From sequence record OM339718.1: a stretch of 64,000 nucleotides of DNA; one strand, 5' to 3'. The position numbers and the translations under genes were made by a program. Shown here piece by piece: positions 3,994 through 63,816 of this stretch. Under the pieces are notes generated by a model that worked only from the letters and a program-made list of their open reading frames with translations, was not told the origin of the DNA and did no database searches. Numbering within the stretch: the stretch's first letter is position 1; each line of letters begins with the position of its first letter.

Positions 3994-5997
3994 ATGAAAG
4001 AACAAGAAGGTAAAATCCTAAGTGATTACGAACATATTTTCCTCAATAGTGATATGTATGTTGGGTCGCTTTCGGAAGAAACCCATTTAGTGTTGGTTGA
4101 TGGGAATTTTGTAGAAAAGCAATACATTCCGGGTTTGGTTAAAATTATCGATGAAATTATCGATAACTCGGTTGATGAAGCTATTCGTACCGATTTCAAA
4201 TTTGCTAATAAAATTGATATTGTTGTTGATGACCAGACCAATCAGGTATCCATTTCTGATAATGGTCGTGGTATCCCACAATATGACGTAAAGACCCCGG
4301 AAGGCGAAACCATCCCATATCCACAAGCTTGTTACACCCGAGCCCGTTCCGGTGGTAACTTCTCGGCTGATCGTAAGGGTATCGGTAAAAATGGTGTTGG
4401 TTCGGTATTGACCAACCTATACTCTACAATGTTCCGTGCGACAACTTGTGATGGGAAAAATACGGTCACAATCTATTGTACACAAAATGCAGAACACCAA
4501 TCCTACACCAAGAAAAAAGGTGGCACTCAGGGTACAACTGTTGAGTTTATTCCAGATCTTCTTGATAAATTTAACATCTTTGGCGGTATGCCCCCTGATG
4601 TAGTTGATGTTATCCGTTCTCGGGTAGAAATCCTTTCTGTTTTGTTCCCACAAGTAAAATTCACATTCAATAAGAAAAAAGTAGATTCCAAGTTCAAGAA
4701 ATTTGCTAGTGACTTTGGGGATCCTGTTATCTTTGAAAATGAGAATTGTTCGTTCTTTATCGGTACATCAGATGAATTCCGTCAACTTAGTTATGTTAAC
4801 GGGGTTCACACTAAGCAGGGTGGTAACCACGTTGAATATCTGATAAACAGTCTATGTGATGAATTGACCCCCATGATCAAGCGTAAGTTTAAGGTCGAGA
4901 TTAACAAAGCCCGTATCAAGGAAAACACTTTGCTGTTCCTTTCTCTTCGTGGCTTTGAGGGTGCCAAATTTGACGGACAAACTAAAGAACGGTTGAGTAA
5001 TTCCAACGGTCAGATCAAGGATCACTGCGGGATCGATATCAAGTCCATAGCCAAAAAGATGATATCCAACGATTCTGTTATCATGCCAATTGTAGAGAGT
5101 GCAATTGCAAAACGGGATGCGGTGGAAAAGGCACTAGCGACAAAAGCACAAAAGAAGGCTTTAACTGCCAACGTACCAAAACATATCCAAGCGAACAAAT
5201 ATGGAAAGAAAGGGTTTGAAACCACTCTGTTCTTGACCGAGGGTGATTCTGCAAGTGGCCCACTGGGTATAACTCGCGACCACGACACTCAAGGTGGATT
5301 CCCGTTGAAGGGTAAACTTCTATCTGTTCATAAATGCGAAAAGGTAAAGGTAATTGCCAACAAAGAGATTGCCAATATTATTTCAATTCTTGGTATGACT
5401 CTAGATGATACAAAAGAGCTACCATCAGGAGATTTCTTTGTAAATAAAGATGGTTTCATTGTTGCAGAAAATGATGAAATGTTGGTAAATGGTAAATGGG
5501 TTGAAACTCGTGGTATTGTAACCGGTAAGGATTGGGAACAAACTCTACAGCCTGATATGTTAAAATATCGTGGTCAAAAAGGGGTTCGACGTAACACCAA
5601 GGCAAATTATGATTATGTTGCTATCTTGGTAGATGCGGATCCAGATGGACGAGGACATATCAGTAACCTGATAATCTCGTTGTTCCATAAGTACTGGAAA
5701 CACTTTATTGATCAAGGTCGTTTGTTGGTATGCCGTACCCCGGAATTCATTAGTCGAAACGGGAAAGAAACCGTTTGGAGTTATGATACGGTAGAATTTC
5801 ACTCCAAGACGTTCAAGGGTTCTGGGTGGAAGCATGAACACGTTAAGGGTCTGGGTCAGTTAGACCGAGCTGACTACAAGAAATGTATTCGAGATCCTTA
5901 TATGGAGGTTGTTCGGGTTGATGAACAAGCAGCAGATGCGTTAGAAATGTTCTTTGGAACCGAATCGGACCTTCGTAAGGTGTGGATGGATGATTAA
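3994..5997 (+). CDS. 39: Type II topoisomerase large subunit, gp39+gp60 as one ORF
   Basis: GHKL motifs EIIDNSVDE, DNGRGIP, GKNGVGS; TOPRIM TEGDSA, PLKGK, DADPDG, KGLG. Confidence 0.95.
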   Translation: MKEQEGKILSDYEHIFLNSDMYVGSLSEETHLVLVDGNFVEKQYIPGLVKIIDEIIDNSVDEAIRTDFKFANKIDIVVDDQTNQVSISDNGRGIPQYDVKTPEGETIPYPQACYTRARSGGNFSADRKGIGKNGVGSVLTNLYSTMFRATTCDGKNTVTIYCTQNAEHQSYTKKKGGTQGTTVEFIPDLLDKFNIFGGMPPDVVDVIRSRVEILSVLFPQVKFTFNKKKVDSKFKKFASDFGDPVIFENENCSFFIGTSDEFRQLSYVNGVHTKQGGNHVEYLINSLCDELTPMIKRKFKVEINKARIKENTLLFLSLRGFEGAKFDGQTKERLSNSNGQIKDHCGIDIKSIAKKMISNDSVIMPIVESAIAKRDAVEKALATKAQKKALTANVPKHIQANKYGKKGFETTLFLTEGDSASGPLGITRDHDTQGGFPLKGKLLSVHKCEKVKVIANKEIANIISILGMTLDDTKELPSGDFFVNKDGFIVAENDEMLVNGKWVETRGIVTGKDWEQTLQPDMLKYRGQKGVRRNTKANYDYVAILVDADPDGRGHISNLIISLFHKYWKHFIDQGRLLVCRTPEFISRNGKETVWSYDTVEFHSKTFKGSGWKHEHVKGLGQLDRADYKKCIRDPYMEVVRVDEQAADALEMFFGTESDLRKVWMDD

Positions 5998-6972: not shown

Positions 6973-9207
6973 ATGAAAATTGTTACAAATAAACAACCTG
7001 TATTTGGGACTGTTATGGAAGAGTCCCGCGATTTTGGTATGAAGTTTGATGAAAAAGCTTATACCATTCTTAGTTCTGGGCTTTATAAATTCAAGATCCG
7101 AGCTTTCATTCGTGAATTGAGCTGTAACGCAATCGATGGTCACATTGCATTGGAAAAGATTGGTGGAACCCCACCGAAATATTTTGATGTAGAGCTTCCG
7201 TCTGATATTAATTTGCAATGGAGACTCCGCGATTATGGTATTGGTATGGACAAGGATGGTATTTTCAACTTGTTCACCACATATTTTGCATCAACCAAGG
7301 AAGATTCTGACGATTTTATCGGTGCATTTGGTCTTGGTTCTAAAAGTCCGTTCTGCTACACAACAACATTCACTGTAACATCGTGGTGTAAGGGTCTCAA
7401 AACCGTCTATAGCATCTTCATGAACAACGGTATACCAAAGTGTGTCCCCATCTTCGAAGAACCGTCAGACGAGCCCACAGGTATCGAAATCGTAATCCCT
7501 ATCGATCAAGATGATATTACCGAAGTTCGGAATGAAGCTCGGGTGGTGTACCACACATTTGATAAAGATGGATTTTATCCAAACATCATCAATCAGAATT
7601 TCGAGTTGACTAACTACAAGTCATCTGGTTACTATGGTTCCATCATGGATAATGGCGTATATGCTGTTATGGGTGGTGTTTCTTACAAGATCCCAGCAAA
7701 GCTTTACGAAAATGAGGTTTGTTCGGTATTCTTTAATAATTCATATAACTTTATCGATTTTCCTGTTGGGTCTCTCAATCCTCTCCCGAACCGGGAAGAA
7801 TTGAGTCTTGATAAACACACACTGAATACACTGAATTCTTATTTTAAATCCCAATCGGACCAAGTTATTGATGAAGTCAATAAAAAGGTTTCTGAACATG
7901 GAAAGGATGCTCGAAGTAAAATTCATGCTATTTTGTCTATGGATTTTGGTGAGCATATCTTTAACAAAGTATCAAAGATTATTGACCATAACGGCAAGTC
8001 TCTTCAAGATTGGCGCTTCTTCTACGAAAGTATTACATCTTCGAAAGAATGGTCTTTGTTTAAAGATTTCTGTGTGGATTACAGTTATAAAAACAAAAAT
8101 TTCGTTTATATCGATACATTTAGTAATGCGGTGCGAAATGTTTGGAATCTTGAACGTGCAAGATATTACGGGTCGTCTCGTAAAATCGAGTTTAATGACT
8201 ATTTCATGCCGTCAGTAAAGAATAAGCGATATCCATTCCCAATCCTTCTGTCTAATATGGATGGTAAGTGGAAGGTAAGGATCAAGCTTCTTATGAAGTA
8301 TGGTATCATTCCTAATGAACGGGTTGTTGTTATGAGCGATTACCCTTATTCTCGCAAACCTTTCAAGAATGTAACTCGAAATCTCTTTATCCAGATTGCA
8401 AAGCGTTACCACAAAGACGATATCGATGTTTTTCATGTAGAGAAGTTGTATGATAAGCACGTTCAAGAAATTGAAGAGAAAGAAGCAGAAGAGAAGCGCC
8501 AACGTCGTTTAGAAGCACAGCGGAATAGGGCTAAAACTCCACGTTACAAACCAGACAACTCGCATTATTATAATAAAGGGTATCGCAGTACTGGCAATTT
8601 CCTTGCCAAGGATGTACACGAGCTTAGTGGGCTGTATGGTCTTCGTTCTGGCGAATATATTGTTGTTGATGGTCATGAAGTTACAGATGGACTTCAAAGT
8701 TGGTTATCTGAGATGTTTGATACAACGTTGTATGCATTTCCGAAAACCCTTGAACGACGGGCTAACATGAATGAGAATTTGACTCTCATTACAAAGGAAA
8801 TGATCAAAGGTAAACTTGTTGAATATCTCAATAACAATTTAAAGGGTAATAAAATTGGTTGGAATATCAATAGGTCTGATAAGCCAAGGGTCGATATGGA
8901 AATTACTCGGGAAATGAAGGACTATTTTGGTATCTCGGAATCCGGTGATTGGGATCATGATCTTGGTAATATTTATGTTCATGCTCAAGAATATTTGACT
9001 GAACATGAATATCAAGTTTATACCGATGTTGTTGAAAACCATCGTCAGAGTATGTATGATGTATATCATAATTTTTATGACGAAATGAAAAAGCAATTCC
9101 CCATGGAATGTGCGATTCTTAGGTTGAAGAAAAATTATAGTTGTGTAAAAAACGAAGAGTTCGAACTTGCAACTAAACTTATTATGGAAAACTACAAAGG
9201 GGTGTAA
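6973..9207 (+). CDS. rIIA: rIIA protein
   Basis: N-terminal HSP90-like ATPase IRELSCNAID, RDYGIGM, STKEDSDDFIGAFGLGSKSPF; 744 aa; precedes rIIB. Confidence 0.93.
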   Translation: MKIVTNKQPVFGTVMEESRDFGMKFDEKAYTILSSGLYKFKIRAFIRELSCNAIDGHIALEKIGGTPPKYFDVELPSDINLQWRLRDYGIGMDKDGIFNLFTTYFASTKEDSDDFIGAFGLGSKSPFCYTTTFTVTSWCKGLKTVYSIFMNNGIPKCVPIFEEPSDEPTGIEIVIPIDQDDITEVRNEARVVYHTFDKDGFYPNIINQNFELTNYKSSGYYGSIMDNGVYAVMGGVSYKIPAKLYENEVCSVFFNNSYNFIDFPVGSLNPLPNREELSLDKHTLNTLNSYFKSQSDQVIDEVNKKVSEHGKDARSKIHAILSMDFGEHIFNKVSKIIDHNGKSLQDWRFFYESITSSKEWSLFKDFCVDYSYKNKNFVYIDTFSNAVRNVWNLERARYYGSSRKIEFNDYFMPSVKNKRYPFPILLSNMDGKWKVRIKLLMKYGIIPNERVVVMSDYPYSRKPFKNVTRNLFIQIAKRYHKDDIDVFHVEKLYDKHVQEIEEKEAEEKRQRRLEAQRNRAKTPRYKPDNSHYYNKGYRSTGNFLAKDVHELSGLYGLRSGEYIVVDGHEVTDGLQSWLSEMFDTTLYAFPKTLERRANMNENLTLITKEMIKGKLVEYLNNNLKGNKIGWNINRSDKPRVDMEITREMKDYFGISESGDWDHDLGNIYVHAQEYLTEHEYQVYTDVVENHRQSMYDVYHNFYDEMKKQFPMECAILRLKKNYSCVKNEEFELATKLIMENYKGV

Positions 9208-9231: not shown

Positions 9232-10425
9232 ATGGAAACTATCCATATTGAAAAACTTGAAGCATTGATTCGTAGCGGTATTTACGATGTAACCGGTTAT
9301 AAAGTAAAAGAACTTGACAACAACAGAACTTTTGCATATTACAACCTAGACGATCTCGATGTTGTAGAACTTGTTATGTATATCGAGGAAGAACTTGATA
9401 TAGATCTTGGCGATCTCGATGTACTTGAAGGATGGGAAGCCCTTACAATTAAAGAATTGATTAAATTGATGGTTGGGACTAATAAAATCGATTTGCAATT
9501 TGATGTACATGATTATTCTGAAAATAAAGTCGAAGAAAGTCATGATGATAAAATTATCCGACTTCATAATCTCGGAATCAGCCAAAACGAAATTTCCCGT
9601 CAAACTGGTATCCCTCGTTCAACAGTAGGTGATGTAGTTCGTCGCTATAAGGGAATTCAGAAGAAGTCGGATAAAACAATCCATTTGAAGGAAATAATCG
9701 AACCGGTTCATACCCCCGTGGTATCTTGGAATGCAAGTTATGACTTTATTAACTGCTTCATTGATGGAACCCCATACGTTGCAGACCGAGCCCACCCACG
9801 GTTTGAAGATGCGTTTCAACTCCTGATCCGCGACAATGATGTGGTCGGTGCGGTAAACCTGATTTCTATCAAAGAAGCAATCAAAACCTATTCTTCTGGT
9901 GATATTCGGATTGAAGGCGACACACTCTACTATCGTGATATTGTTCTTGATACATCGATGACCCGAAGAATCATTGATATGTGGGCGTCCGGGGAAGAGT
10001 TTGAGTATATGGTTACCTTCCTGAAAAACCTGTTACAGAATCCGCGCCGTGCGGCTGTATACGAGCTTTTTGACTTCCTGACTCATAGTGACATCAAAAT
10101 CACCAACGATGGTCATTTCCTAGCGTACAAGCGCGTTACCGAGGATTATAAGGATATCCGCACCCACACGTTTGATAATAGTATTGGTTCTAAGCCACGA
10201 GTCGAGCCATTTGAGGTAGATGACGACCGAAACAATACTTGTGCTGCGGGTCTTCATGCTGCTGCTCGTCACTACATCCCATACTATTCATCTTGTGAGA
10301 ATGACCGGGTTGTGATGGTTAAGATCAACCCAGCCCACGTCGTTGCTATCCCAACTGATTACGACAATGCGAAACTTCGTACTTGGACTTATGAAGTAAT
10401 CTCAGACGTAACTCACGAGTTCTAA
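9232..10425 (+). CDS. rIIB: rIIB protein with N-terminal ACP-like domain and HTH
   Basis: C-terminal rIIB core (FLKNLLQNP, DGHFLAYKRV, CAAGLH, VKINPAHVVAIPTDYDNAKLR); HTH GISQNEISRQTGIPRSTV; N-terminal LDDLDVVELVMYIEEELDI. Confidence 0.9.
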   Translation: METIHIEKLEALIRSGIYDVTGYKVKELDNNRTFAYYNLDDLDVVELVMYIEEELDIDLGDLDVLEGWEALTIKELIKLMVGTNKIDLQFDVHDYSENKVEESHDDKIIRLHNLGISQNEISRQTGIPRSTVGDVVRRYKGIQKKSDKTIHLKEIIEPVHTPVVSWNASYDFINCFIDGTPYVADRAHPRFEDAFQLLIRDNDVVGAVNLISIKEAIKTYSSGDIRIEGDTLYYRDIVLDTSMTRRIIDMWASGEEFEYMVTFLKNLLQNPRRAAVYELFDFLTHSDIKITNDGHFLAYKRVTEDYKDIRTHTFDNSIGSKPRVEPFEVDDDRNNTCAAGLHAAARHYIPYYSSCENDRVVMVKINPAHVVAIPTDYDNAKLRTWTYEVISDVTHEF

Positions 10426-14855: not shown

Positions 14856-15119
14856 ATGAAAAATGTAAGTTGGAACGAAGCAGGGCGTTGTGCGGATCGG
14901 TTGATGTTGGCATGTAAACCTCATCTCCAAGGAAAAATTATTTCTCCGTTGAAAGATATCTACGGAAACAACCTTCCGGGGCTATTGAAAGATGTGGTTT
15001 ACTACAGTTCAGTTTATGGGACACCAGTGTGTTGTGCTATGGATTACGTTGTTGTAATCGACGCATGTAAAATCCTTGATGAGAAAGGTTTTTTGGAATT
15101 GGAGGTTGGAAATGTATGA
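14856..15119 (+). CDS. Hypothetical protein
   Basis: GAGG SD. Confidence 0.72.
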   Translation: MKNVSWNEAGRCADRLMLACKPHLQGKIISPLKDIYGNNLPGLLKDVVYYSSVYGTPVCCAMDYVVVIDACKILDEKGFLELEVGNV

Positions 15120-15447
15120 CGCAAAAGATTTACTGACAGAAATTACCATTCGGAACAAGCATAGTACAGATGAGATTGTTGAGGAAATACTGAATGCTGT
15201 AATTCGGGATATGCTCAATCGTCGTTCTCTGATTGGAACCATTAAATATTCGGTGGTGTGTGATTTTATTTCTGCCAGAATTCCAAAAACAGTTGAATTT
15301 GATAAAAACCTTGTATTGGTTGAAATTATCAATCAAGCGAACCTTCGTGGTTTTGATTGTGAATATGATAACCACAAGGAGTTGTTTAATTTTGGTGTGA
15401 GTGTCGAATCCATCAAAGAATTCACAAAAAACCAAAAGAACAATTGA
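15112..15447 (+). CDS. Hypothetical protein
   Basis: GGAGG SD before ATG 15112. Confidence 0.72.
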   Translation: MYDAKDLLTEITIRNKHSTDEIVEEILNAVIRDMLNRRSLIGTIKYSVVCDFISARIPKTVEFDKNLVLVEIINQANLRGFDCEYDNHKELFNFGVSVESIKEFTKNQKNN

Positions 15448-15477
15448 CTTCAATTTCGGGGTATGAGATTATACCCC
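15444..15477 (+). promoter_or_regulatory. Early promoter with -10 inside a hairpin
   Basis: TTGACT-N17-GATTAT; GGGGTAT/ATACCCC arms flank the -10. Confidence 0.6.
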
Positions 15478-15501
15478 TACAAAACAAAAGAGAGAAATAA
15501 T

Positions 15502-16011
15502 ATGAGCTTTACCACTTCTGATTTTTGCAAAGCCTACGGTTGGAACGAACAAGAAGTTACCATGAAACTCTCTGGTGATTTTCTTCACAAACCTACAGGT
15601 ACGATCCTTGGTAATTTGTTTGATCTCAAAATCGACGTAGAAAACCGACTGAAAAAATTCGAACGTCAGGCCAAAAAAGCACAGCGAGAAGCAGAACTAA
15701 ACGACCTTGTTCCTGCGGCCATCGACATTCTTCAAAACTCTCTCCCGGAGGCGAAGGTATGGAAAAACAAAACCATGCCGAACGTCATCCTCAACGAAAT
15801 CCATTTCTATATTGTCCTTGGTAAGAGTCTGGATTCTGACGTTATCGTTCGCTTCCATCACCCAGACATGACCGGTGAACAGGTAGCACGTTACACCGGA
15901 ATGAAGGTCAAATATGAAACAGGCCGTGAGAATAACTGTATCATCTCAGGTTTGAATATCGAGAAGGCTGCAAGCGTAATCGAGAAAGTAGCCATGATGA
16001 CCGGGGAATAA
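15502..16011 (+). CDS. Hypothetical protein
   Basis: ATG 15502 downstream of promoter; C-ending codon bias suggests high expression. Confidence 0.78.
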   Translation: MSFTTSDFCKAYGWNEQEVTMKLSGDFLHKPTGTILGNLFDLKIDVENRLKKFERQAKKAQREAELNDLVPAAIDILQNSLPEAKVWKNKTMPNVILNEIHFYIVLGKSLDSDVIVRFHHPDMTGEQVARYTGMKVKYETGRENNCIISGLNIEKAASVIEKVAMMTGE

Positions 16012-16013
16012 CA

Positions 16014-16220
16014 GTGATTGATATGCAGTCTGATAAGTTTCATGCTTACGGATACAAACATTGCTTCTACATCAAAAATCTTGAAAAGAATATTCGTTCC
16101 AAATTTATTATCGGAAAGTTAAGTGTTTTTAACAAGGTGAAGGAATGTAGATTAAAGAAAACGTTTGATCATGTGTGTAGTAAGTTGTGGATACTTTATA
16201 AACCTAGATCTCGAACGTAG
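16014..16220 (+). CDS. Hypothetical basic protein
   Basis: GTG-start ORF whose stop lies in the structured element; weak SD. Confidence 0.45.
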   Translation: MIDMQSDKFHAYGYKHCFYIKNLEKNIRSKFIIGKLSVFNKVKECRLKKTFDHVCSKLWILYKPRSRT

Positions 16221-16315
16221 TGAGACGGCGTAGCCGCCTGTTCGCTTCGCTCACATCCTTTCTAATTATAGATCTTCTATATAAATACTTATAGAGACTT
16301 TATACTTTGATTGCA
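16212..16315. repeat. Structured non-coding element, copy A
   Basis: CGAACGTAGTGAG..TTCGCTTCGCTC plus 37 bp core 16261..16297, exactly the reverse complement of 63724..63760. Confidence 0.92.
16280..16287 (+). promoter_or_regulatory. T4-type late promoter box TATAAATA
   Basis: Exact T4 gp55 consensus inside element A. Confidence 0.55.
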
Positions 16316-16439
16316 CTTGAAACTAAAAAGATTTGACTTCTAAATTCATGTGTGGCTAAATAATATTTTGGGCTTTGCTTGTTTTTAGATGAGTGTTAGA
16401 AAGTCCACAATTCACCCCTTCCACTAAAAAGGATCGAAG

Positions 16440-16967
16440 ATGAAAAGTGGTAGTATATTAGTAGGGATCCTCCTACTTCTAACGTCGATATCGGCAAATG
16501 CTGTTATGTATGAAAACCGTGAACTAACGGATAATCAGATTTATACAATTCAGCGAGCTTATGAGCTGGGAGAGTCTTCCGGTTTTGGGCTTACACTGGC
16601 TGCTATTGCTCTCACTGAGAGTCGTGCAGGTAAATTTTTAATCAACAATCGTACTGGTGATTATGGTGTGTTCCAGAACAACCTGAAATATACAGTTAAA
16701 CGAGTTGAACAGCTAACTGGCGCTAAGATGGGTTGGAGACAACAGCGAAAGCTAAGGTCTGAACTTATTAACAGTATGGAGAGTTCTGCAAACTATGCAC
16801 TTATGGAGCTTGAGTACTGGAAGAAAATCCGAAATGGTGACTGGAAAATGGTTGTTAAAAGCTATAATGCTGGATACAGCCCAAACAGTGCTGATGGGAT
16901 TGAATATTACGAACGGATTGCAAAAAACATCAAGTTTTTAAGATCTTGTGGTTGCTATCGTCAGTGA
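16440..16967 (+). CDS. vs.1: Lytic transglycosylase (SLT)-like protein, T4 vs.1-like
   Basis: Signal-like N-terminus; AIALTES (catalytic E), DYGVFQ, SYNAG. Confidence 0.78.
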   Translation: MKSGSILVGILLLLTSISANAVMYENRELTDNQIYTIQRAYELGESSGFGLTLAAIALTESRAGKFLINNRTGDYGVFQNNLKYTVKRVEQLTGAKMGWRQQRKLRSELINSMESSANYALMELEYWKKIRNGDWKMVVKSYNAGYSPNSADGIEYYERIAKNIKFLRSCGCYRQ

Positions 16968-16979
16968 TATGAGTATAAT

Positions 16980-17016
16980 AGGTCTTGTCCTTCGGGATGA
17001 GACCTTTTTCTTTTTT
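16980..17016 (+). terminator. Intrinsic terminator, UUCG loop
   Basis: AGGTCTTGTCC-TTCG-GGATGAGACCT plus T-run. Confidence 0.85.
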
Positions 17017-17031
17017 TGGAGACTAGAAAAC

Positions 17032-17139
17032 ATGAGCGAACTAATTACTATATCCGTACTTACTATTGGTGGTCTTATGTGGTATGGTTCTTGTGTTCTG
17101 GCTGCAAAAATTCTGTCTGGTGATTTTGATAAGGAATAA
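17032..17139 (+). CDS. Small membrane peptide
   Basis: 35 aa with one hydrophobic segment; GGAG upstream. Confidence 0.5.
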   Translation: MSELITISVLTIGGLMWYGSCVLAAKILSGDFDKE

Positions 17140-17142
17140 AAT

Positions 17143-17403
17143 ATGGCTAAATGGTATGATGATAATGGGATCCGTAAAGTTCGGTATGTAGTTATTAACG
17201 AGTATGCCCTTGGGTACATATACGAAGAACAACCTACAGTCGTTGGTATTCTTCGGGGCTCTATCCTTCGTGGTTATCCTTTCCTGTCAGAAGAACCGAT
17301 GTCTACATTTGGTAAAACTATTCGAGATGTCACGCTTGAGGATTTTGAGATTTATCGTGTAATGGTTCCAAAATTTGTTGTTGACCAAATTAATGTAATG
17401 TGA
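17143..17403 (+). CDS. Hypothetical protein
   Basis: AAGGA SD. Confidence 0.72.
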   Translation: MAKWYDDNGIRKVRYVVINEYALGYIYEEQPTVVGILRGSILRGYPFLSEEPMSTFGKTIRDVTLEDFEIYRVMVPKFVVDQINVM

Positions 17404-17435
17404 TTTAATAAAGATAAATCAGAAAGGAGATAATT

Positions 17436-17693
17436 ATGATATTTAAAATTGGTCAGTCTTATAAAATAGTTTCTATGTTTGGCGTTGCTGTTGAACACAT
17501 GGATTGTCTTAACGACGTCATTGTCTGTACTGACTTTGATGAAGACTCCGGGGTTGCTTGGTTCGACGGACTGATGTGGACAAATTTCGGGGACCGTGGG
17601 AATTATATTCTTGCGATGAGTGATGAGGGAGTTGAAGCCTTCGGAACTGATTATGGAAGTTTCCTCTCCAACGTTCTGGAAGAGGTGAAATAA
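17436..17693 (+). CDS. Hypothetical protein
   Basis: AAGGAG SD. Confidence 0.75.
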   Translation: MIFKIGQSYKIVSMFGVAVEHMDCLNDVIVCTDFDEDSGVAWFDGLMWTNFGDRGNYILAMSDEGVEAFGTDYGSFLSNVLEEVK

Positions 17694-17950
17694 TGGCTGT
17701 TGGGTTTGGTGGTTGCGATAACCATTTGGAAACTATTGAATCCACAATCAACAATGGTATTGACTTTGCTCGTTCTCAACTTCACCAAGGGGTATCTTCC
17801 GAATTTTGTGAAGAATGCGGAGATAGGATCCCGGAAGGGAGAAGGAAAATAATGGTTGTTCATTTTTGTGTTAAATGTCAAAGTGACCTAGACAAAAAGA
17901 TGAAACCATTATATAATCGTCGCGGAAGTAAAGATTCTCAACTTAGATAG
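17693..17950 (+). CDS. ybiI: DksA/TraR-family C4 zinc finger protein, YbiI-like
   Basis: CEECGDRIPEGRR...CVKCQ and C-terminal YNRRGSKDSQLR as in enterobacterial YbiI. Confidence 0.88.
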   Translation: MAVGFGGCDNHLETIESTINNGIDFARSQLHQGVSSEFCEECGDRIPEGRRKIMVVHFCVKCQSDLDKKMKPLYNRRGSKDSQLR

Positions 17951-17959
17951 GAGAATTTC

Positions 17960-18145
17960 ATGAAACCTTTCAAAAACCAAGAGACCGAAAACTTCTGTCA
18001 GAAAGTTGCAGAAGTGTATCAATCTGATACAATCGAAGCTAATATTATGTTTGAGAATTACATTTCTGAACATGGTAAAAATATGATGCGATGGGAAATG
18101 ATCGCCATAAAAGATCGTATCAGTTTCATCATTAAACACTATTAA
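17960..18145 (+). CDS. Hypothetical protein
   Basis: AGGAG SD. Confidence 0.7.
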   Translation: MKPFKNQETENFCQKVAEVYQSDTIEANIMFENYISEHGKNMMRWEMIAIKDRISFIIKHY

Positions 18146-27261: not shown

Positions 27262-27297
27262 TTGACAGAGTATCCCCTGATGTGGGATACTCTTTTT
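27262..27297 (+). promoter_or_regulatory. Early promoter overlapping a terminator-like hairpin
   Basis: TTGACA-N18-GATACT; AGAGTATCCC/GGGATACTCT stem plus T-run. Confidence 0.7.
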
Positions 27298-27321
27298 GTC
27301 GAAACAAACCGAGGAATAGTT

Positions 27322-29661: not shown

Positions 29662-29939
29662 TGCTTAGTGCTTATGTAACAATGATTTATGTTTTTGCTT
29701 TTATCAATACAATTACGTCAGTTCGTAGTGTCCTGATCTTGGACGGGAAACTTGAGCCAAAATTTGGATTCGATTTTGACCTTATCGAACGGTATGAACC
29801 GATCCGGAAAAAGAAGGTTGGTCTTGGTTTTAACCCAAAACCCTTTCGTTGGTGCGCTATCCCAGTTACAGTACTAATCGATTCTGTTATTTGGCCTGCT
29901 ACTATTCTTGGTTGGATTGTCAAAATCTTCAAAAAATAA
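29661..29939 (+). CDS. Membrane protein
   Basis: Two hydrophobic segments; TAATG overlap. Confidence 0.68.
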   Translation: MLSAYVTMIYVFAFINTITSVRSVLILDGKLEPKFGFDFDLIERYEPIRKKKVGLGFNPKPFRWCAIPVTVLIDSVIWPATILGWIVKIFKK

Positions 29940-29940
29940 G

Positions 29941-29969
29941 TTGACTATAGTTCTGGGAGATGGGATACT
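29941..29969 (+). promoter_or_regulatory. Early promoter
   Basis: TTGACT-N17-GATACT. Confidence 0.65.
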
Positions 29970-29997
29970 CTAGTTGAACTTGAGAAGGAGATGAATT

Positions 29998-53275: not shown

Positions 53276-53572
53276 ATGAAAATAAGTAAAGAAGAAGTAG
53301 GAAGTTATATCAGTACTGTTTTTTGGTTTACCGCAAAACAGGGTATCGATAACACAAATGGTGTATATGGGGTGGATGGTATTATTGAAAAACATAATAG
53401 ATATCTATTCTGTATAATCACATTAAAAAACGGTTTAGTTTTTCATGGTGTCAATTCGGGTGGATTAGACCCAGAAAAATACGACAGGACATACGCCGAA
53501 AACGATGCATTTGAAGATGCATTTAATAAGGTATGGGAAGCCGTCGCAATTCACAAATCTTTTTCAAAATAG
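53276..53572 (+). CDS. Hypothetical protein (Gp49/DUF2829-like tail)
   Basis: CIITLKNG..FHGVNSG..DPEKYD...A..DAFNKVWE; family guess is tentative. Confidence 0.6.
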   Translation: MKISKEEVGSYISTVFWFTAKQGIDNTNGVYGVDGIIEKHNRYLFCIITLKNGLVFHGVNSGGLDPEKYDRTYAENDAFEDAFNKVWEAVAIHKSFSK

Positions 53573-53575
53573 TTG

Positions 53576-53604
53576 TTGACTGGGTATCTCAGAAATGGGA
53601 TACT
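53576..53604 (+). promoter_or_regulatory. Early promoter with hairpin, homologous to 27262
   Basis: TTGACT-N17-GATACT; GGGTATCTC/GGGATACTC; shared downstream TTGTCGAAACAAA. Confidence 0.72.
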
Positions 53605-53631
53605 CTTCTTGTCGAAACAAAGGAGATAACC

Positions 53632-63336: not shown

Positions 63337-63600
63337 ATGAAAGTACGTTTTAAAAGTGACCAATGCTATGATGAATTTATGTCTACAATTAGTGATGAAA
63401 TTGTGACGTCAGAAACCTCGTGGGCAAGCAAGGACGTACATGATATCTTTTCTAATATTGCACCAGACGAGGTATTTGAGGTAGAATTTACCGATAAAAA
63501 TGAAATCAAAGCGGTAAATGGGTTCCGACCGTTTGACGAAGGTTCCACATTCACAGTTATGTTCAAAGATGAAGTAGATAACTATCTAGATTTCGTTTAA
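63337..63600 (+). CDS. Small acidic protein, FKS-motif paralog family
   Basis: VRFKSDQCYDEF...DNYLDFV; GAGG SD. Confidence 0.75.
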   Translation: MKVRFKSDQCYDEFMSTISDEIVTSETSWASKDVHDIFSNIAPDEVFEVEFTDKNEIKAVNGFRPFDEGSTFTVMFKDEVDNYLDFV

Positions 63601-63609
63601 TTATGCCCC

Positions 63610-63690
63610 TAGGAAGCTCTACAATCAATTCTAAAAGTAATCCTATAACTTTGTATCGGTTTTGAATATAATTGATTGTAGAGCTTCCTA
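63610..63690. repeat. Perfect 21 bp inverted repeat with 39 nt spacer
   Basis: TAGGAAGCTCTACAATCAATT (63610..63630) / AATTGATTGTAGAGCTTCCTA (63670..63690). Confidence 0.92.
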
Positions 63691-63705
63691 TGAGGTAGTA
63701 TCACT

Positions 63706-63799
63706 TGAAATCAAAATATAAAATCTCTATAAGTATTTATATAGAAGATCTATAATTAGAGAGCGAAGCGAACCGCCGAAGGCGTACTCACTACGTTCG
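63706..63799. repeat. Structured non-coding element, copy B (inverted relative to copy A)
   Basis: 37 bp core 63724..63760, then GAGCGAAGCGAA-CCGCCGAAGGCG-TACTCACTACGTTCG. Confidence 0.92.
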
Positions 63800-63816
63800 T
63801 ATTTTAAGGAGTAAAA

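Follow-up and report, generated by a model that had tools for sequence, protein, structure and literature searches.

The replication origins of bacteriophage T4, of which there are at least five in 169 kb, have no motif in common, and only two of them are defined (PMC3016281). These two, oriF (uvsY) and oriG (34), measure ~100 bp and combine an AT-rich, easily unwound element with a MotA-dependent middle promoter (PMC3016281). A third, oriE, has its repeated words in a non-coding stretch of the baseplate region, as 12-nt direct-repeat iterons at one locus, whose role is unproven (PMC3016281). PeSLs are a different kind of composite intergenic repeat, in which a stem-loop is joined to an AT-rich segment; some copies lie at indels of hyperplastic regions, and they have been considered as potential homology patches (PMC2839356, PMC4122927). 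PeSLs occur in large numbers, include a functional terminator and a sigma-70 promoter close to the consensus, and are linked with expression of the open reading frames (ORFs) beside them (PMC2839356, PMC4122927). Here we analysed a stretch of 64,000 nucleotides, referred to as the window, from Aeromonas phage P19 (OM339718.1; 228,236 bp; bases 15000-18000 matched at 100%), a T4-like phage classified in Straboviridae, Emmerichvirinae, Ceceduovirus. The window contains two copies of a composite non-coding element that occurs six times in the P19 genome, at evenly spaced sites that are shared across genera, and we tentatively propose that these are sites at which replication starts.

The P19 element resembles oriF and oriG in its size of about 100 bp, in its AT-rich, easily unwound composition and in its presence several times per genome at a similar density, and differs from them in having no detectable promoter or MotA, and in the single conserved sequence, with its GC hairpin module, that is common to all copies (PMC3016281). 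Some T4 origins lie near switches of the transcribed strand and others do not, and the same is true of P19 copies 1, 2 and 6 compared with copies 3-5. Doubled elements in a spacer of phages 65, Ah1 and Aeh1 recall oriE, although they are dispersed composites of ~110-180 nt instead of short iterons at a single locus. The elements also share the composite build of PeSLs; unlike PeSLs, they carry neither a promoter nor a terminator signal, number six or seven copies, occur in both orientations, and show cross-genus synteny and even spacing.

The initial annotation of the window had described two structured elements in inverted orientation, built around a 37-nt match. This match was reproduced: 16261-16297 is the exact reverse complement of 63724-63760, and exactness stops at both ends. 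The AT-rich part is conserved too, as had been stated, within an ungapped inverted repeat of 68 nt (16258-16325 and 63696-63763, 90% complementary), by far the longest inverted repeat of the window. The flanking blocks are identical in both copies, CGAACGTAGTGAG at 16212-16224 and on the minus strand at 63787-63799, and GTTCGCTTCGCTC at 16240-16252 and on the minus strand at 63761-63773, and they surround small GC hairpins that differ between the two (16226-16236 in copy A, 63774-63784 in copy B). The copies are made up as follows, where the window position is the record position minus 62,000.

16212-16325, + strand: copy A, whole element; third of the six P19 copies (record 78212-78325)
16212-16224, + strand: X arm of copy A, the 5' arm of a GC-rich stem-loop module; identical in five of the six P19 copies
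16226-16236, + strand: inner GC hairpin of copy A, 4 bp with a 3-nt loop; stem kept in 18 of 19 copies
16240-16254, + strand: Y arm of copy A, the 3' arm of the stem-loop module
16258-16312, + strand: AT-rich dyad-symmetric core of copy A, with nested inverted arms
16306-16323, + strand: conserved terminal box ("T-box") of copy A; in P19 confined to the six elements
63696-63799, - strand: copy B, whole element; fourth of the six P19 copies (record 125696-125799)
63761-63799, - strand: stem-loop module of copy B, with X arm 63787-63799, inner hairpin 63774-63784 and Y arm 63761-63773
63696-63759, - strand: core (63709-63759) and terminal box (63698-63715) of copy B; 21% GC over 63696-63763

Both copies lie in intergenic gaps, as annotated: 16012-16439 for copy A and 63601-63816 for copy B. 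The gap of copy A measures 428 nt, between an Alc-like gene (15502-16011) and the vs.1/SLT gene (16440-16967), and the copy has the orientation of these flanking genes; its segment 16258-16325 has 24% GC, against 39% for the window. A CTAAATA word stands at 16356-16362, 30 nt downstream of copy A and ahead of the vs.1/SLT gene. Copy B occupies a gap of 216 nt between small ORFs (63337-63600 and 63817 onward) and is inverted relative to all of the surrounding + strand genes. Its arms are those of copy A, and its inner hairpin, with a swapped stem pair and another loop, is a variant that also occurs at the orthologous site in phages CC2 and AS-zj. Between the stop codon of the upstream ORF and copy B, positions 63610-63690 form a further hairpin (24-bp stem, 96% complementary, 33-nt loop), which is conserved in CC2 and AS-zj and not in phage 65, and has no T-run behind it. 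A tRNA search of the window found none.

The elements had been taken for a pair; P19 in fact carries six copies, of which the window merely contains two. The BLASTn comparison with the genome and related phages that had been proposed as a check found the element at 121 places in 21 related Aeromonas phage records, with four to nine copies per record, so that it is conserved and chance is excluded. In the P19 record the copies, numbered 1-6, lie at 12.7 (+), 37.3 (-), 78.2 (+, copy A), 125.7 (-, copy B), 167.9 (-) and 198.8 kb (-). Two of them, copy A and copy 6, run in the direction of their neighbouring genes and three run against it; copy 2 is placed between convergent genes, on the strand of the adjoining SegE-like gene. 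This neighbour, P19_0042 (L003:37578-38480), encodes a GIY-YIG homing endonuclease of the SegE type (Pfam, E=3e-30), and an ORF of similar size adjoins the copy 2 site in phages ZPAH1 and 65 too.

The sites are orthologous in Ceceduovirus and Ishigurovirus: by gp24/inh, where the tail-fibre genes end, by vs.1, upstream of ndd/gp52 and in the gp54-gp26 spacer. Phage 65 thus has a copy by gp24/inh, Aswh_1 one in the gp54/hub-gene spacer and avDM6 one by the SLT gene. All six sites are present in ZPAH1, which is filed under Ishigurovirus and whose ORFs have a mean amino acid identity of 62.7% to P19 and 60.4% to phage 65, and phage 65 has six sites as well, one of them with a doubled copy. Copies 3 and 4 adjoin variable DNA, whereas copies 1, 2 and 6 lie within conserved late-gene regions. 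The record of Aeromonas phage AP1 (MT713136.1, 254 kb) has nine element places, and its SLT-gene match is annotated beside "DNA polymerase"; the extra size and copies may reflect duplication or assembly problems. Larger collections were scanned with short degenerate patterns built from the invariant columns of the element. Within IMG/VR and the metagenome collection, the full composite was found solely in 65/CC2-like phages, and a 14-mer scan of IMG/VR gave matches that were mostly chance. No description of these elements, their words or repeats was found in the literature.

The anatomy of the element, 104-114 nt (~110 nt) in length, was derived from 19 distinct copies. In module 1, with 61-62% GC, a 4-bp hairpin stands between a 5' arm of 13 nt and a 3' arm of 13-15 nt; module 2, with 21-24% GC, is a ~53-nt core with nested inverted arms, followed by the conserved terminal box. 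Core and box together span 68 nt, and their composition is that of an AT-rich unwinding element. The indels between the modules are not multiples of three, and the element is therefore non-coding. About 40 nt of the core are invariant across the six P19 copies, and all of the sub-motifs tested occur in P19 exclusively inside the six elements. In the terminal box the central two bases vary (AG, CT, TA or TT), and the Y arm has two variable positions, which in phage copies are always C..G or T..A.

The mini-hairpin words singled out by the initial annotation are present where they had been placed, GCGTAGC at 16228-16234 (+), GCGAAGC at 16244-16250 (-) and 63763-63769 (+), and CCGAAGG at 63776-63782 (+). 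As a selected feature, however, they did not stand up: the loops vary freely (GTA, GGA, GCA, TTT, AAA, TTC, TAC), and covariation is not above controls, with one pair of the inner stem altered on both sides in three copies. The stem-loop module as a whole folds as an imperfect hairpin with 89-99% of cells paired, and under an explicit structure 92.5% of cells pair, as opposed to 36-48% with slid partners. Two both-sided changes between the inner arms of the P19 type and the 65 type hang on the placement of one alignment gap and are not claimed. Fold z-scores, from -0.7 to -2.5, are unremarkable, and a stable cruciform was rejected, as a strong hairpin is confined to the 65-type cores and copy 5. 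The dyad symmetry is real; hairpin formation and a palindromic protein site look alike in these data.

The element stands out from its surroundings by its conservation. The core is ~94% identical between P19 and ZPAH1, against ~70% for the surrounding gp54/gp26 DNA. At copy 3, indels between P19 and CC2 abut on either side, and the element itself is 96% conserved. In the hypervariable region around copy 4 (copy B), alignment to ZPAH1 and phage 65 is limited to the element and the DNA next to it. The core variant is uniform within each genome, being either of the P19/CC2/ZPAH1 type or of the 65/avDM6 type, whereas the adjoining stem-loops differ site by site within a genome. The modules of the element can be flipped or swapped between copies: the stem-loop of ZPAH1 copy 1 is the exact reverse complement of that in ZPAH1 copies 4 and 6, and ZPAH1 copy 2 has a terminal box on both sides of the core and its stem-loop on the far side. 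In the gp54-gp26 spacer of phage 65 (~500 nt non-coding; L024:783-985), two head-to-head cores, with 31-nt arms that are 97% complementary, surround two small GC hairpins.

A second family of elements occurs in phages of the Aeh1 group. The gp54-gp26 spacer of Ah1 (Cinqassovirus), ~520 nt of non-coding DNA, contains a tandem ~180-nt unit assembled from the same 13-nt 5' arm, a box like the terminal box, an AT-rich palindrome with 18-21-nt arms and a GC hairpin. The tandem pair is found in this spacer in both Ah1 (L025:673-1014) and Aeh1 (L285:19930-20260), and the unit is dispersed over 80 places in 13 records, with eight or nine per genome in Ah1, avDM12, Aeh1, phiAS5 and phiWae14. In the PX29/AsFcp group there are just two or three partial copies. 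Aeh1 has seven sites, one of them the tandem pair, and three of the seven are syntenic with P19 (gp54/gp26, by vs.1 and upstream of gp52); at its 49.6-kb site, the palindrome is flanked by the 3' arm as used in ZPAH1. The gp54-gp26 spacer comprises ~230-520 nt of non-coding DNA in each group examined, within an essential baseplate gene cluster.

The sites are evenly spaced in both families. The null model placed sites anywhere on the circular genome, in genes and intergenic gaps alike, and the coefficient of variation of the gaps, the smallest gap and the largest gap gave the following probabilities.

P19, gaps 24.6-47.5 kb: 0.0012 (coefficient of variation), 0.0055 (smallest gap), 0.0010 (largest gap)
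ZPAH1, gaps 23.6-51.3 kb: 0.0019, 0.0089 and 0.0041, in the same order
Phage 65, gaps 24.0-52.5 kb: 0.0016, 0.0092 and 0.0042
Aeh1, gaps 24.9-43.6 kb: 0.0003, 0.0003 and 0.0009

P19, ZPAH1 and phage 65 count as one observation, since the sites are common to all three, and Aeh1 is a largely independent one. The density is one site per 33-38 kb in both families.

Taken together, the few copies, fixed sites, symmetry, orientation independence, constraint and two-family even spacing suggest a function that is exerted at the DNA level and on the scale of the whole chromosome. Replication initiation is the process that we infer from copy number, synteny, anatomy, spacing and constraint. Our tentative proposal, which we hold at somewhat less than an even chance, is that the elements are six DNA-level cis-acting sites for the start of replication, either as origins or as recombination-dependent restart points. 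With slightly less assurance again, they could be the sequence-defined replication or restart origins of the large Aeromonas T4-like phages: a common origin module, made of a REP-like hairpin and an AT-rich palindrome and set every 33-40 kb, the parts of which would have been re-invented or reshuffled in the 65/CC2 and Aeh1 lineages. The view of the initial annotation that these are structured, conserved, non-coding cis elements is thus upheld, and among the roles that it listed (origins, priming or packaging signals), an origin-like one is the best single reading in the light of copy number, cross-genus synteny, freedom of orientation and even spacing.

In the proposed mechanism, the dyad-symmetric core with 21-24% GC would be the part that is easily melted or extruded, and the GC-rich hairpin module together with the terminal box would act as a fixed landmark, recognised by its structure or by a protein. 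The replication or recombination machinery would be loaded at the element, as at the AT-rich unwinding element of T4 oriF and oriG. The site would work in either orientation because both modules are near-palindromic. Orientation independence, module flips and the head-to-head cores fit a symmetric DNA site better than a transcript. In addition, near-identical repeats longer than 100 bp that lie in both orientations would be expected to carry a cost in a recombination-proficient T4-type phage, which argues for a compensating function; the homology requirement for recombination is cited in PMC2839356.

Several results weigh against the proposal that replication starts at the elements. The promoter half of an origin of the T4 oriF/oriG type is missing, since neither a promoter nor a MotA domain was found: a promoter scan of both copies gave no sigma-70-type promoter above chance inside the element, and no MotA domain was present in the ORFs between gp52 and asiA (L004:44351-45962), where AsiA is annotated. 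Likewise, motA is not annotated in phage 65, and MotA was not found in Aeh1 by its authors (PMC1524935). A repeated consensus origin would be unlike T4, whose origins share no motif. No candidate binding protein was found, formal covariation showed no excess over shuffles, and the DNA hairpin of the core is weak in most P19 and CC2 copies (z ~ -1). No change in GC or AT skew occurs at copies 3-5, which lie in a long co-directional gene block (percentiles 0.06-0.82), and even spacing would suit other genome-wide DNA functions as well. One further result is in favour of the proposal. ORFs within 300 nt of an element have 76% identity between P19 and ZPAH1, which have the same core type, against 62.5% elsewhere, with a rotation p=0.016 that is one of nine tests and fails correction; the rise is absent when either genome is compared with phage 65, whose core is of the other type. 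The similarity of the flanks is suggestive of exchange that may have been seeded at matching elements. Origins of T4 are recombination hotspots, with which such exchange would be compatible.

Two further comparisons were set aside. A trans-acting factor that tracks the core type was sought through phylogenetic discordance, an approach without power here, as ZPAH1 is equidistant from P19 and phage 65. Synteny of the sites with the neighbourhoods of T4 origins (vs.1/oriC, gene 26/oriF, tail-fibre cluster/oriG) was not better than chance and was not used.

The stem-loop module has relatives outside these phages. The kinship with plasmid primosome-assembly sites or single-strand origins that the note on this DNA had suggested was not borne out, as the stem-loop gave no blastn match in 72,556 plasmid records at E<=10. 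A 33-kb contig (L070) comes from an unrelated small tailed phage and encodes a terminase, a portal, a SegE-like endonuclease, a T4-type lysozyme and a Rha/Ant regulator. Within 776 nt of non-coding DNA (L070:7766-8542) it contains both arms of the stem-loop and the beginning of the core, at 89% over 47 nt, along with several short AGATCT-containing repeats. This region adjoins the lysozyme gene and is ~1.2 kb from the SegE-like GIY-YIG gene. A DNA-binding protein common to P19 and L070 was considered and dropped, the lysozyme being the sole protein that they share.

The 13-nt X arm, which also occurs in the Ah1/Aeh1-type elements, is found in hairpin repeats of cellular genomes. The pattern scan of these genomes gave at least 120 matches, about the chance level (~100 expected), and many are nevertheless clearly related. 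Anaerococcus species contain dozens of imperfect palindromes of ~110 nt with the phage 5' arm and the phage-65 variant of the 3' arm (L149, L160, L182, L260 and ~40 more loci), and two Haloferax loci (L188, L249) run on into the P19-type 3' arm. In hairpins of Acidobacteria, Chloroflexi, delta-proteobacteria and Bacteroidetes, the 5' arm forms the loop of a co-varying stem. Further hairpin loci, from Acidobacteria, Planctomycetota and others, are L164, L171, L217 and L221, and GTCAT...ATGAC is a frequent boundary of the cellular units. No Rfam family matched at ten of the cellular hairpin loci, the genes recurring beside the cellular hairpins belonged to housekeeping families only, and a literature search for the hairpin words found nothing. 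A REP of the host was considered as well, and no Aeromonas chromosome was among the cellular matches listed. As an imperfect GC-rich palindrome with conserved internal words and dispersed hairpin relatives in cellular genomes, the phage stem-loop resembles REP/BIME repeats. It differs from them in having six copies only, and in being joined in every case to an AT-rich core, which has no counterpart in the cellular repeats. The REP class is marked by high copy number and by a cognate transposase encoded in the same genome; no transposase-like gene was found beside the P19 copies, and none recurs beside the cellular hairpins.

Among other explanations, action at the level of transcription, as an unconventional promoter (TATA.T) for short sense or antisense RNAs or as an RNA processing or stability hairpin, seems quite improbable to us. 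The -10-like hexamer TATA.T is indeed conserved ahead of the terminal box with its fifth base free, a gene of avDM6 starts 23 nt past the element, hairpins or terminators follow copies 1, 2 and 4 within ~100 nt, and G-T pairs of the element strand would correspond to G-U pairs in RNA; moreover, with AsiA but no known MotA, an unknown class of middle-mode promoter may exist (PMC1524935). Nevertheless, the hexamer has no recognisable upstream element, and there is no -35, no known activator box and no promoter above chance. Nor is there an intrinsic terminator with a U-tract: no hairpin with a T-run lies in or beside either copy of the window. Rfam 15 gave no gathering-score match in the window, a permissive search (E up to 5) of L070 and the surroundings of copy A gave noise alone, and the fold z-scores are those given above. 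A late promoter was rejected as well. The T4 late-promoter word TATAAATA (PMC1524935) lies within the core at 16280-16287, and six of its 20 occurrences in P19 are the elements, but it is replaced in the copies of phage 65 and avDM6, and the lineage uses CTAAATA. This is the late promoter reported for Aeh1 (PMC1524935), and it precedes P19 late genes, often after one or two C (L003:3972-4041, 4529-4611, 8457-8583, 10265-10399; L005). At copy 1, a CTAAATA word ~15-25 nt upstream of the stem-loop points into the element (P19, L003:12668-12674; ZPAH1, L145 near 34484; phage 65, L279 near 9394); since the annotated neighbours are on the opposite strand, a late transcript through copy 1 is implied. 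The inconsistent orientation relative to genes and the flipping of modules speak against any function in transcription, which would also leave the even spacing unexplained. Higher in our estimation, though still unlikely, are architectural or enzyme-loading sites, at which the phage topoisomerase or a nucleoid-type protein binds or cleaves (domain boundaries), or loading points in the service of late transcription; a dimer would then bind the palindromic core, with the hairpin module as an auxiliary landmark. Such sites would account equally well for the even spacing, the orientation independence and the symmetry of the modules. One core type per genome, with stem-loops diverging by site, is what co-evolution with one trans-acting protein would produce, and the stem-loop has its relatives among the REP-like hairpins of cellular genomes. 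CTAAATA lies within 120 nt of three of the six copies in both P19 and phage 65 (p ~0.01) and of two of six ZPAH1 and two of seven Aeh1 sites (p ~0.08, not significant), all against a whole-genome null; the association may, however, reflect that both features need large intergenic gaps. Here too no binding protein was identified, and P19 and L070 have the lysozyme alone in common.

Recombination linkers or a selfish repeat, that is, a REP/MITE-like module that reached a few sites, is kept by gene conversion and would act, as PeSLs do, chiefly as homology patches for modular exchange between co-infecting phages, are unlikely in our view, a little more so than the architectural sites. Concerted evolution of the cores inside genomes, module flips and rearrangements, the indels that abut copy 3 and the island of homology at copy 4 would all be expected of them, as would flank similarity raised solely between genomes of the same core type, the presence of part of the element in the unrelated small phage L070 and the wide spread of the stem-loop family in cellular genomes. 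Against this, the sites are orthologous across genera and not polymorphic, two-family even spacing is not expected of a selfish repeat, ~40 core nucleotides are invariant with sub-motifs absent elsewhere in P19, no transposase-like neighbour occurs in phage or cellular loci, and the cost of >100-bp repeats in both orientations argues for a function (homology requirement, PMC2839356). The initial annotation had also raised inversion of the 47-kb block between copies A and B, for which their mutually inverted arrangement and 37-nt exact match would be suitable. We consider a programmed inversion of this segment highly improbable. Orthologous copies have the same DNA on either side in CC2, AS-zj, ZPAH1 and phage 65, and since collinearity extends to both flanks of every copy in CC2, ZPAH1 and phage 65, inversion between copies is not observed; furthermore, the genes between copies A and B all point as their neighbours do, and no recombinase gene adjoins the copies.

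Two side observations concern other short sequences. Early-promoter-like repeats, with a TTGACT word, ~17 nt and a GATACT word, stand upstream of small + strand ORFs of the window (29928-29976, 53563-53611 and 27283-27308); they are probably the sigma-70 early promoters of this lineage, and they differ in appearance from the element. A perfect 12-nt palindrome on the TATAGATCT word of the core (L005:22638-22649) lies just past the gp26 late promoter, ~50 nt from copy 6.

How T4-type phages choose the sites at which replication starts is understood only in part. With a module that is conserved, countable and evenly spaced in two lineages related to T4, origin choice could be approached from the sequence, and the element, if our proposal that it is a site of replication start is true, would be the T4 superfamily's first consensus origin. 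Regular spacing is unusual for a non-coding element of a phage, and indicates a genome-scale constraint even if the elements serve another purpose. A second thread to emerge from this locus is the kinship of the phage stem-loop with a family of bacterial and archaeal hairpins that is apparently unnamed.

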